A stretch of DNA of 64,000 nt from Paragordius varius (taxonomy: Eukaryota; Animalia; Nematomorpha). Location of the stretch: positions 4,526,001-4,590,000 of the forward strand of contig OZ176058.1 in the NCBI GenBank assembly GCA_964247055.1, read 5' to 3'. The translations under genes and the position numbers were made by a program. Shown piece by piece: positions 25,851 through 60,300 of this stretch (positions are counted from its first letter, which is position 1; every line of letters begins with the position of its first letter). The notes under the pieces were generated by a model that was given only the letters and a program-made list of their open reading frames with translations, was not told where the DNA came from and ran no database searches.

Positions 25851-28800
25851 GTATTTTCTTGGGGTGTCAGACTTCCTTGTCGCGTTAGTAAAATAACTTT
25901 TTCAGATGACTTTGAATTTAAATTTTCCTTTAAAGTTGTTTTCGGTGAAGAATAACCATAAAAAAATGTCGCCAAAACTACGACAAAGGTACCCAGGGCA
26001 AAAAGTCTAAAATAAATATTAAAAATTTTATAAAAATTAAAATTTTTTGAAAAAATAAAAAAAAAGATTGTTAAAATAAATATTTTATAAATAAAACTAA
26101 AATATTTTATAAAAAAAGTCTAAAATGAATATTAAAAATTTAATAAAAAAAAATTAAAAAAAAACCAAAAAAAGATTGTTGGAATAAATATTTTATAAAT
26201 AAAAGTAAAAATTTTACAAAAAAAAGTAAAAAAAACTACATAAAAAATGTAAAAGGACATATTAAAAGACATCCATACTTTTTAAATTTCAATATAACTC
26301 CTCATATAATTGTAATAAATAGCTTATATGATAAAAATTAAGGTTTAAAAAGTATGGTTGTCTTTTTAACTAATCATTTGTCTTTATATTTTGACGTTTT
26401 GTCCATAGTATAATTTTAATTTTTACTGTATAAGGTTTTTTTTATTATAGTATACATTTTAATGATTGGTTATTTTACAACACTGTGATAGTTGGGGCAA
26501 TTCACAACCCAATAGTTACAGTAGTGTATGAAAAAAAAGAAAGTAGCTAATAGTTTATTAAACATTTTGTACTTTTTTCCATACACTACTGTAGTGTTGC
26601 ATTCAAATTGCCCCCAACTATATAGTTAAATTAATTTTCTACATGAATAAACTATTTAAAAATATAAAATGTTGGAAAGACAAATATGCTAATACTTTTT
26701 TTAAAAAATATCTTAAAACTTACTTTTAAATTATTCAATATAATGAAATAATAATAAATAAACCCTAAAAAACATGCTAGAAAAACCAATATTTTTATAC
26801 TTTTTTTTACAAAGTATATCTTAAAACTAACTTTTAAATTATTAAAAATAAATATAATTAAAATATTCATGCGCTAGAAAAATATTTTTATAGGCTCAAT
26901 ATAATTGTTATTTAATAAATTTTAACTTTTAATTAAAAAACCCAAAAAAACTGAAAACCAATATATTTACTTTTTCATAATATTTAAAATTACTTTTACA
27001 TATTTTAACTTTTAAGTAAAAAAACCCGAAAAAAACCAAAACATTCGGGAAAAAACCAATATTTTTATATTTCTTTCAAAAAATATATTTTAAAACTTAC
27101 TTTTAAATTGTTTTTTAAGTAAAAAAACCTAAATAACCAAAAATGTTGGAAAAACAAATATTTTTATACTTCTTTTAATATATTTTAAAACTTTTTAAAT
27201 TATTTAAAAATACCAATAAAAATCTAAAAATAATCAAAAAACTTGCTAAAACCAAAATTTTTACAAATATATCTTAAAACTTACTTTTTTCATAAAAAAC
27301 CAAAAACATTTTGGAACACTTCTTCAAAATAATAATTAAAATATTTAAAAAATCAATAAAAAAAACCAATATTTATTAAATTTTTATATTATTTTTACCT
27401 GTTAGGTTCAAAATCATGTAAAATTAACATAATTAAAATTATAGCTCTTAAGTTAAAAATCTAAAAAAACCCAATATTTTTATACTTTTTAAAAAATATC
27501 TTGAAACTTACTTTTAAATTATATTTTAAGTTAAAATAAACCACGACAAATGTACCCAAGGCAAAAAGTCTAAAATGAATATTAAAAATTTAATAAAAAA
27601 AAATTAAAAAAAAACCAAAAAAAGATTGTTGGAATAAATATTTTATAAATAAAAGTAAAAATTTTACCAAAAAAGTAAAAAAAAAACTACATAAAAAATG
27701 TAAAAGGGCAATAATTTTTTTCGAAAATACCATACTTTTTAAATCTCGATTTTTTCAAATAATTAACTCATTGTTTTTAATGGTAAAGTGTGAAATAAAT
27801 ATAAATATATAACTAACACATTCAATTCTATATTTTATGATTGTAAGTAAATAGCTTATATATGATAAAAATTAAGGTTTAAAAAGTATGGTTGTCTTTT
27901 TAACTAATCATTTGTCTTTATATTTTGACGTTTTGTCCATAGTATAATTTTAATTTTTACTGTATAAGGTTTTTTTTATTATAGTATACATTTTAATGAT
28001 TGGTTATTTTACAACACTGTGATAGTTGGGGCAATTCACAACCCAATAGTTACAGTAGTGTATGAAAAAAAAGAAAGTAGCTAATAGTTTATTAAACATT
28101 TTGTACTTTTTTCCATACACTACTGTAGTGTTGCATTCAAATTGCCCCCAACTATATAGTTAAATTAATTTTCTACATGAATAAACTATTTAAAAATATA
28201 AAATGTTGGAAAGACAAATATGCTAATACTTTTTTTAAAAAATATCTTAAAACTTACTTTTAAATTATTCAATATAATGAAATAATAATAAATAAACCCT
28301 AAAAAACATGCTAGAAAAACCAATATTTTTATACTTTTTTTTACAAAGTATATCTTAAAACTAACTTTTAAATTATTAAAAATAAATATAATTAAAATAT
28401 TCATGCGCTAGAAAAATATTTTTATAGGCTCAATATAATTGTTATTTAATAAATTTTAACTTTTAATTAAAAAACCCAAAAAAACTGAAAACCAATATAT
28501 TTACTTTTTCATAATATTTAAAATTACTTTTACATATTTTAACTTTTAAGTAAAAAAACCCGAAAAAAACCAAAACATTCGGGAAAAAACCAATATTTTT
28601 ATATTTCTTTCAAAAAATATATTTTAAAACTTACTTTTAAATTGTTTTTTAAGTAAAAAAACCTAAATAACCAAAAATGTTGGAAAAACAAATATTTTTA
28701 TACTTCTTTTAATATATTTTAAAACTTTTTAAATTATTTAAAAATACCAATAAAAATCTAAAAATAATCAAAAAACTTGCTAAAACCAAAATTTTTACAA

Positions 28801-57315: not shown

Positions 57316-60300
57316 TTAATTATATAAGGCTAGTTTAAGAAGTCCTTGTAAGAATTGTATAATTTCATTTGATCCCAATTTTGATTCTCCATAGAAACGA
57401 TCTACAAAGGTTATTGGAACCTAATTTAAATAAAAAAAAATAAAAAATATTAAATTATTTAAAAATTTAATAATTAAATTTAAATAAAATTATAAATATA
57501 TTTATATATATATATCTATTAATTTAAAATAATTGATACAGTAGCGTATGGGATAACCAAACTTTCGTCAAAAATAAATAAACGAAATCAATTTAAATGT
57601 TATAGGGGAAACTAGGTTTAATTTTAACGCTTTTTGGTTTTTTACCATATGCCACTGTAAAAATATAAAAATCTAAAGCCATAAATTAAATTATTACAAA
57701 TTTAATAAAAACAAATAATTAAAATATATAAAAATAGCCTAAAAAATATTTCAAAAATTCAAGTATATCAATTATTAAAATTAAAAAAAAACACTTTTCA
57801 AAATCATTTTTTTGTTTAATATATCTATTTAAATTAAAAAAGATTTAAATTTTTGTTTTAATTAAAATATTTTTTTTGATAAAAAAATTCCTATATACTG
57901 CAAACATTTTGATATATATAAAAAAATAAAAATATTAAAAAATTGAAAAAAAAAATTATTTAAAAACAAAAAATTAAATTAAAAATTAAAAAACATTTAA
58001 AAAATATATTAAAAATACCTAAAAAATAAATAAATTCAAAAAAGTTTAAAAATAAAGTAATAGATAAACAAATTAATTAAAAAAATTAAATATAAACATA
58101 TAAAATATAATAAAAATTTAAATAAAATTAAAATAATAAATTAAATCAAAATAATTAAAAATAAATTAAAATAAATTTAAAAATAAATACTTCTGCAATA
58201 GTCATATGGTGTGATTTAGCTCTAACCAAAATTTCCATTTGAAAAACGTAACCTTTCGAATGACACGAATTAATTAATTTTTTCAACATTTCAGTTTTAT
58301 ATAATCTATAAAATAATTAAAATAATATTTATAAATATTATTTACAAAATTATAAAAAATATTAATAATTAAAATTAAAATATAAATATATATATATATA
58401 TATATATAAATTTAAAAAAAAAGTTTTTAAAAAATACAGCAGGAATGAATTAATTTTTTCAACATTTCAGTTTTATATAATCTCTAAAATATTTAAAATA
58501 TAAAAAAAATATTAAAAATTATAAAAAAATATTTTTAAATATATAAAAAAATGTATAAATAATTTTATTTGATATTAAATTTACAAAAAATAAAAGTATT
58601 ATTTAAATTTAAACATTTAATTTTTTAAAAATACAGCAGGAATGAATTAATTTTTTCAACATTTCAGTTTTATATAATCTGTAAAAATATTCAAAATTAG
58701 TAAAAAAATATAAAATATTAATTAAAAAAAATTTAAAAATACTATTTAAAATAATTGAATATTAATAAAAATATTATAAATAAAAAATATTAAAGATATT
58801 ATTAAAATTAATTTTAAAATAATTAAAAAATTTTAAAAATATTTTAATTTTGCAACATCTATAAAATAAAAAATTAAAATTTAAAAAAAACAAAAAATTT
58901 TTAAAATAGAAAATATAAAAAAATTAAGAAAAAATATTTTTAAAAAATATATAAAAAAATATTCCAAAATAATTTAAATAAAAAATACAGCAAGAATTTA
59001 TTAATTTATTTAACATTTCAGTTTTATATAATCTATAAAATAATTAAAAATATTAAAAAAATATTTTATAACAAAATAAAAATATTATTTAAAGTAATTT
59101 AAACATTTCAAATTATTTCAAAAAAATTTAAATAAAAAATGGCAACAATTAATTAATTATTTTTTTAACATTTCAAGTTTTATATAATGTCATATATTAG
59201 TTTATTGAAAAATTTTAAAAATTATAACCTAACTGTACTAATAAATAATTTACATTTTTTTTTAATTTTTTATTATTTTTATTAAATTAATTAGTAAAAA
59301 AAATAAAGATAATAAATTAAAAAAAAACGCAATATTTAATATAATTTATTTAAATAAAATTAAAAAAATAATAATAAATTAAAATATTTGGTGAGATAAT
59401 AATTTTTGAAAAAAAATCAAGATTGGTATATTTTATATTTGATTTTTTATAATATTAAATTATAAAAAAAATAAAATTATTAAAAAATAATTAATAAAAA
59501 ATTTTTAATAAAATATTTAATTATTTTATATACCTGAAACTTCCTGTGAGATCTGATATTCCAGGATTCAACACAATTTGGGTTAATAAATTAGCCCCTC
59601 GACTATATTAATAATAAAATATATTTTTGAAAAATTTATTAATTTTAATTTAATTTTATTACAATATATTAAAAAAATTAAGAAATTGATTATCTTTTAA
59701 ATTAAAAAAATAATTGCTAATTTTTTAAGATTTTTTATTTTATTAAAATTTTTATTTTATATGAAATAAAATATTTTTATTGCTATATATATAATATATA
59801 TATTTTGCAAAAAATGTAAATTAATTATTTATAATATATATTTTTCACAAAAATAAAATATTTTTAATGATATATTATTTATCCTATATATTTATTTTAA
59901 ATATAAAAATTAATAATATAAATCTTATTAATAAAATTAATATTATGATTTTATATTAGGAATATTAAATTCATTTTTAAAATAATTAATCAAGATATAT
60001 TAAATTTAATTATAGAAAATAAAATTTATAATAATTATATATAAAAATTTAATTAAATAAAAATTTAATTGATAATTATAATAAATATAATAAAAAATAA
60101 ATTTAATATTAAAAAATACCATAATAAATAAATTATAATTAAATATAAATAATATCAATCAATTAAAACAAATTATTTAAAAAATATATTAAAAATAAAA
60201 TTTTTATAAAAAAAAATAAAATAAAAAAAGTTATAAAAATTAAAATATTAAATTTATTAAAAATTATTTTTTTAACCTAAAAAGTTTTCTTTTAAAATCC

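Follow-up and report, generated by a model that had tools for sequence, protein, structure and literature searches.

Exon-edge copies in two adjacent genes

We analysed 64,000 nucleotides (nt) of the genome of the nematomorph Paragordius varius (assembly GCA_964247055.1, contig OZ176058.1, positions 4,526,001 to 4,590,000; hereafter the window, numbered from its first base). The window is extremely AT-rich, with a G+C content of 7-26% in 2-kb windows and of ~10% within long introns. It encodes an SLC35A3-like gene for a UDP-GlcNAc transporter (seven exons, 25739..51020, minus strand) and, adjoining it and also on the minus strand, DPM1. Truncated copies of exon edges, each with its own splice site, sit in the adjoining introns of these genes. 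We counted 44 such copies across the SLC35A3-like gene and DPM1, and here describe their structure, the changes that separate them from the functional exons and their probable origin.

The exons of the SLC35A3-like gene lie on the minus strand at 51020-50658 (exon 1), 49919-49797 (exon 2), 48024-47883 (exon 3), 47296-47216 (exon 4), 46150-46032 (exon 5), 36446..36579 (functional exon 6) and 26006-25739 (exon 7). Exon 6 starts in phase 0 and encodes 44 residues. The spliced translation is 409 amino acids long. Its best match is the Gordionus (horsehair worm) protein P0001, which shares 62% identity and is collinear with it at every exon junction; the identity to vertebrate SLC35A3 is ~55%. The head of exon 6 is nearly invariant between the window protein and the Gordionus protein, which indicates strong purifying selection in the functional position.

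The copy set comprises every BLAST match of 12 exons inside both genes, with no picking of examples. Copies occur in introns 2, 5 and 6 and the 3′ flank of the SLC35A3-like gene and in at least two introns of DPM1, and all those listed below are on the minus strand. Intron 5 contains ~21 copies of its own acceptor (AG) joined to the exon 6 head (36697..43447), which we delineated with BLAST, MAFFT and nhmmer. Tandem Repeats Finder (TRF) and BLAST show that they are arranged head-to-tail with a period of ~350-400 nt. The start of the exon 6 head is additionally present as a 20-nt fragment (CTGGGTGG...) at 41830-41849, ~40 nt upstream of the full copy 41798; this is a micro-duplication within the array unit, reported by TRF as a 43-nt repeat (41787-41871).

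Tail copies are less numerous. Seven copies of the exon 6 tail with its GT donor lie in intron 6 (33944..36265) and carry four synonymous and three non-synonymous distinct changes. Intron 5 holds one copy of the exon 5 tail with its donor (45573..45647), and intron 2 holds four copies of the exon 2 tail with its donor (49366, 48978, 48766 and 48520, spanning 48468..49366).

Both edges of exon 7 have been copied. Intron 6 contains four identical 32-nt copies of the exon 7 head (27538-27569, 29072-29103, 30606-30637 and 32140-32171), each with three synonymous differences from exon 7. They lie within the units of a 1534-bp tandem repeat (26650-33330). Its open reading frames (ORFs), sub-repeats and G+C islands appear five times in identical form, and the exon 7 head is present in four of the units. 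Each unit also includes a ~200-nt G+C-richer segment with long inverted arms (e.g., 26448-26646, GTTGGGGGCAATT...AATTGCCCCAAC); it may represent a hairpin or an element resembling a miniature inverted-repeat transposable element (MITE). The coding tail of exon 7, stop codon included, has been copied twice downstream of the real stop (25302..25595). One of these copies (25497-25595) has three synonymous changes and stays in frame despite two 3-nt indels. Both tail copies fall in ATG-started ORFs with an identical 13-residue ending before the stop (25302-25643) and could be alternative terminal exons.

In DPM1, exon D7 (58305-58191) has four head copies upstream of it (58481, 58678, 59032 and 59188; together 58191..59188), three of which have one breakpoint in common. 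Exon D4 (63460-63384) has two upstream copies composed of acceptor plus head (63630 and 63917; together 63384..63917). The DPM1 head copies thus total six.

Silent changes in the copies exceed neutral expectation

A sequence-only reading of the window had proposed, from chosen examples, that the copies diverge from the functional exons almost only at synonymous sites. The examples themselves were reproduced. All changes are synonymous in the exon 6 head copies 36857-36911 (4/4) and 39398-39453 (5/5), in the exon 7 head copy 27538-27569 (3/3) and in the exon 2 tail copy 49328-49366 (3/3). In the exon 5 tail copy 45573-45647 the substitutions are 3/3 synonymous and a T run is shortened by 1 nt, and the DPM1 head copy 58991-59032 has four synonymous changes and one missense change. 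Different copies also carry different states of the same codon, as had been described (GCC, GCT or GCA at codon 1; GCT, GCG or GCC at codon 14).

We extended the count to all 44 copies. Each distinct change (site and base) was counted once and classified in the true reading frame, and copies were trimmed at the duplication breakpoints by a rule blind to codon position. This resulted in 34 synonymous (S) and 22 non-synonymous (N) distinct substitutions (61% silent). The raw BLAST high-scoring segment pairs (HSPs), which extend past the breakpoints into unrelated sequence, gave S = 46 and N = 64 (42% silent). The silent share expected under neutrality is 0.235 with uniform mutation, 0.288 with kappa 4, 0.250 with a fivefold GC-to-AT bias and 0.237 with a spectrum derived from introns, i.e., estimated from paralogous intron alignments of these arrays. 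The silent excess was significant for every combination of count and spectrum, including the AT-biased model (P = 3e-9 to 2e-3). Of the 56 changes, 35 are at third, 14 at first and 7 at second codon positions (P = 7.5e-6). Reading in either of the two wrong frames abolished the excess, with silent shares of 0.23 and 0.05. Changes found in a single copy are silent-enriched as well (21 S, 16 N).

The excess is therefore far above neutral, but "almost only synonymous" overstates it. About 40% of the distinct changes in the trimmed set alter the protein. The nearest exon 2 tail copy has 3 S and 0 N, whereas the distal ones carry missense changes and TAA, with CAA>TAA stops at 48713 and 48468. The 1-nt deletion in the exon 5 tail copy 45573 is a frameshift.

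Chance, example picking, detection bias or assembly artefact could in principle generate such a pattern. The earlier examples were indeed chosen, the raw HSPs are just 42% silent, and G and C at codon positions 1 and 2 ease the detection of copies in AT-rich introns. Yet P stays ≤ 2e-3 with the most conservative count and spectrum, and the excess depends on the correct frame. A profile search found no badly decayed copies; the scores were bimodal and did not pile up near the threshold, so the detection threshold is not the source of the silent pattern. The arrays are also present in another individual's reads (see below). We consider an origin by chance, selective choice or artefact extremely unlikely.

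Several simple evolutionary models were rejected. Neutral decay of pseudo-exons predicts ~24-29% silent changes, compared with the 61% (trimmed) or 42% (raw) observed. AT-biased mutation would raise the missense share, because most G and C in the exons are at codon positions 1 and 2, and the expected silent share stays at 0.24-0.25. Between the exon 6 head copies and the functional exon, divergence per synonymous site (dS) is ~0.18 and per non-synonymous site (dN) ~0.018, and dN/dS of the copies is ~0.1-0.25. If copies had budded serially from a single functional lineage and then decayed neutrally, the pairwise dN/dS would be ≥ 0.5, as non-synonymous sites would evolve neutrally and silent sites could change at most twice as fast, and the ratio would be ~1 over many copies. 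By the same kind of reasoning, symmetric conversion with the functional exon as a fixed anchor also gives ≥ 0.5, and the observed ratio is lower. The failure of these models implies that protein-level selection must have acted on the copy lineages for most of their history.

It had been suggested that the truncated copies are or were filtered by such selection. As the source of the silent bias, protein-level selection stands; nothing shows that the copies themselves are selected. Purifying selection on the copies would act if they served as conversion donors (a "reservoir"), or if missense copies were harmful once converted into the functional exon (second-order selection). In its favour, the dN/dS of ~0.1-0.25 is below the 0.5 of simple birth-and-decay or symmetric conversion, the splice dinucleotides AG and GT are retained in all full copies, decayed copies are lacking and singletons are silent-enriched. 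However, the copies include stops, a frameshift and missense changes, and their variation is silent, with no gain at the protein level. The allelic diversity that we measured (see below) accounts for the numbers without selection on the copies, and second-order selection on them as conversion donors is not needed. We regard this explanation as unlikely.

Breakpoints and mosaicism of the exon 6 head array

Three breakpoints recur among the exon 6 head copies (exon nt ~34, ~54 and ~68), and beyond them the sequence is AT-rich filler. The AG acceptor is present in 19 of the 19 copies that reach the exon start. One copy (39221) has a 9-nt deletion. Copies with the same breakpoint, such as the exon 6 class "ATATAGTT/TTTT" and the DPM1 D7 class "TGCTGT/ATTTT" (slash, breakpoint), differ from each other, mainly at silent sites. 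This excludes independent duplications as the source of the differences and requires homologous exchange. Silent variants are shared among copies in a mosaic fashion, also within one breakpoint class, and all four gametes are present in 8 of 21 pairs of silent sites over a span of 54 nt.

The same array bears on the question of whether copies are spliced into mRNA and selected as coding sequence, for instance as frame-preserving 51-nt cassette exons. In some head copies (class A), the AG is followed after 51 nt by GTTTTT or GTWWWW, which resembles real donors of this gene (such as CAG/GTTTTG and CAG/GTTTAA; here the slash marks the splice site) and the generally weak donors of this genome. Several observations oppose such use. 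The Gordionus orthologue has no 17-amino-acid insertion at this junction, and copies 39800 and 43439 no longer have the G of the supposed donor. The silent bias is the same in copies broken at nt ~34, in tail copies and in stop-bearing copies, and repeating half a transmembrane helix would probably ruin the transporter. Splicing of the copies into mRNA is a very improbable cause of the silent bias. Recursive splice sites, in which an AG is followed by a regenerated GT donor, were not found among the head copies, which read AG/GCC or AG/GCT.

Functional alleles and arrays in other individuals

We compared the window with public sequencing runs under the same species label (samples S1 and S2), using unitigs that mapped on exon 6 and behaved as DNA. 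The read evidence covers 36440-36585 of the window (146 bases) in short unitigs. In S2, one 578-nt unitig contains two exon 6 head copies 359 nt apart. The arrays are therefore tandem on one molecule in a further individual and do not represent mis-assembled alleles. Relative to the single-copy middle of exon 6, the head and the tail are both multi-copy; the depth of the head is ~21x in S1 and ~9-12x in S2, although these are rough values from summed unitig depth.

Two sequences, with depths of 209.5 and 137.5, cover the single-copy middle of exon 6 in S2. Their summed depth equals the total of 347, and both are functional haplotypes. A further functional haplotype, the only sequence over the single-copy part of the exon, is present in S1. 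Functional exon 6 sequences diverge from the window at 2.4-4.3% of coding bases (dS ~0.10-0.18), and all six of the differences that could be located are silent third-position changes (nt 30, 39, 42, 66, 78 and 84; the changes are TCA>TCG, TCT>TCC, GCA>GCG, GCT>GCC, TAT>TAC and GTG>GTA). The allelic dS of 0.10-0.18 is comparable to the copy-to-exon dS of ~0.18, and the dN of the copies is about ten times lower.

The alleles of functional exons in other individuals also recur in the copies. Haplotype A of S2 has TAT>TAC and GCT>GCC together, on a unitig that includes the single-copy part of the exon. The intronic copy 39451 of the window carries both TAC and GCC, and the GTA state is also found among the reads. 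Comparison of copy alleles with functional alleles, which had been put forward as a check, thus identified two to three variants common to both.

The high silent diversity is not confined to copied sequence. It is also seen at copy-free sites, namely nt 78 and 84 of exon 6 and exon 1. For exon 1, which has no copies, 58% of the 31-mers were found in S1 and 23% in S2. This low sharing indicates that high diversity is general and not caused by the copies. A protein search with the exon 1 ORF for contigs of other individuals gave no matches, and neither this ORF nor the DNA of the Gordionus orthologue was on record when looked up in public assemblies. The window alleles at 36496 and 36502 are absent from both runs of S1, the best-matching sample; the assembly may derive from another individual, or contigs may have been filtered.

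We considered that the silent variants might come from a paralogue or homeologue, in which case the two S2 "haplotypes" would be two loci. A coding divergence of ≥ 3% within one sample is unusually high for alleles, and the published genome paper of Gordionus montsenyensis, in which introns go unmentioned, reports a heterozygosity of merely 0.55% (and 26.9% G+C). Against two loci, the single-copy stretch of exon 6 is covered by one sequence in S1, the pair of S2 unitigs is near-equal in depth and jointly makes up all of the depth there, and the copies share breakpoints and lie in cis arrays beside exon 6. We find a paralogous source distinctly unlikely.

Origin and turnover of the copies

The reading that we favour, with a probability of roughly 0.65, is that the copies were taken recently, as snapshots, from the working exon ends of other haplotypes that are very divergent, and are not a selected reserve. 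Tandem duplications across exon-intron borders would build the arrays, placing a splice site and a truncated exon edge in the adjoining intron. Such copies would be tolerated since each has a single splice site and would hence not be recognised as an exon; whole-exon duplicates would be spliced in and then purged by selection. Both the invisibility of the copies to splicing and the direction and mechanism of the exchange are what we infer from these patterns.

The arrays would turn over fast by homologous unequal crossover or gene conversion, and the lack of badly decayed copies together with the apparent difference in copy number between individuals points to fast turnover. A functional exon edge, often from another divergent haplotype, would become an internal copy of the array, and the reverse would occur as well. 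An exchange between a functional head and a copy head would keep the breakpoint of the copy and install the head of the functional allele. As nearly all individuals would be heterozygous at many silent sites, the array would become loaded with the heads of differing functional alleles. With the very high silent diversity of the population, ~0.1-0.2 per silent site, the differences between copy and exon would be mostly old allelic ones, screened by purifying selection while both lineages were functional. The neutral decay of a copy since it left the functional position would be small, ~0.02 per site. The numbers fit: the copy dS of ~0.18 is matched by an allelic dS of 0.10-0.18 plus this decay of ~0.02. 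Unequal exchange or conversion with divergent haplotypes was among the routes listed at the outset, and it is the one that accommodates the differences between same-breakpoint copies, the mosaic silent sites, the allele sharing and the match in dS.

Several points weigh against this account. Only two to three variants are shared between copies and functional alleles, and the probability of such sharing by chance is ~5-15%. Haplotype A of S2 has five differences, two of them unplaced, and the read support amounts to 146 bases in short unitigs. S1 and S2 could be either one interbreeding population or cryptic lineages. The copy-number estimates from summed unitig depth are rough, and the ratios in the tail region are inconsistent. 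The expected rise in missense changes with distance from the exon is seen only as a trend (Fisher P = 0.07, Spearman P = 0.23).

A more far-reaching possibility is that exon edges and intronic copies form one exchanging pool, with the copies donating back. Silent border haplotypes would then be shuffled and stored genome-wide, perhaps kept clean by second-order selection or partly spliced as in-frame micro-cassettes. We think this extension improbable.

If the copies are indeed snapshots of functional alleles, the arrays would be a natural archive in which each copy records the exon-border state of a past haplotype, and the ratio of silent to missense changes would date a copy relative to allelic coalescence. 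They would also provide a handle on array turnover, on unequal recombination between homologues and on the very high diversity of a little-studied animal. A caution that follows is that a fragment with a low dN/dS is not necessarily functional.

Other features of the window

Two further regions lie outside the copy arrays. The SLC35A3-like gene and DPM1 are separated by ~6 kb (51100-57000) with a G+C content of 23-26%. Many short ORFs lie there on either strand, among which no gene was recognised, although no database search was made with them. Between DPM1 exons D4 and D5 lies a 21/42-nt tandem repeat of ~58 copies (60524-61697, consensus AAGTTGGTCCTTGAACATTTC), presumably intronic, which is open in several frames on both strands.

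Comparison with known systems

We compared the exon-edge arrays to systems in which incomplete copies accompany a functional sequence. Silent-cassette arrays (chicken psi-V, Borrelia vls and Neisseria pilS) are similar in having truncated, promoterless copies by an expressed site and in using conversion. Those cassettes keep open frames and supply amino-acid diversity, whereas the copies described here include stops and frameshifts, vary silently and belong to housekeeping genes. Not all copies are open-framed, and the allelic differences that were located in functional exon 6 (6/6) leave the protein unchanged, which is not what a donor array would show. The "exon-edge reservoir" system proposed from the sequence is not supported: the selection can all predate copying, some copies contain stops and frameshifts, no amino-acid diversity is added, and silent diversity is also high at sites that have no copies.

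Tandem, mutually exclusive exons of the Dscam type likewise repeat exon sequence in tandem within a gene, but they are whole spliced exons with two splice sites, whereas the copies here are truncated and have one. Hellsten et al., in 2011, reportedly described how introns are gained or grow when sequence across an AGGT site is duplicated in tandem. In both cases the tandem duplication includes exon sequence together with a splice signal; the AGGT process makes a new intron from exon sequence, whereas here an existing intron is enlarged by copies of its own borders. Young pseudogenes with low Ka/Ks resemble the copies in that the differences were filtered before loss of function. Here, in contrast, the functional lineages would be divergent alleles of the same exon and the copies would be continually renewed.

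Concerted evolution with exchange between functional gene and pseudogene, as in CYP21A2/CYP21A1P, also has tandem copies beside one functional member, mosaic variants and functional/non-functional exchange, and copy number may differ between individuals in our case (rough depth estimates). It differs in that the units here consist of an exon edge plus a splice site within the gene's own intron, and that in this hyperdiverse genome the exchange is visible as silent variation and not as disease-type missense transfer. A full-text literature search gave no relevant description of exon-edge arrays or of nematomorph intron structure. The behaviour of the arrays is that of concerted evolution with one selected member, combined with a low Ka/Ks inherited from functional lineages; it is the setting that is unusual, and introns largely made of tandem copies of their own exon borders may deserve their own description.

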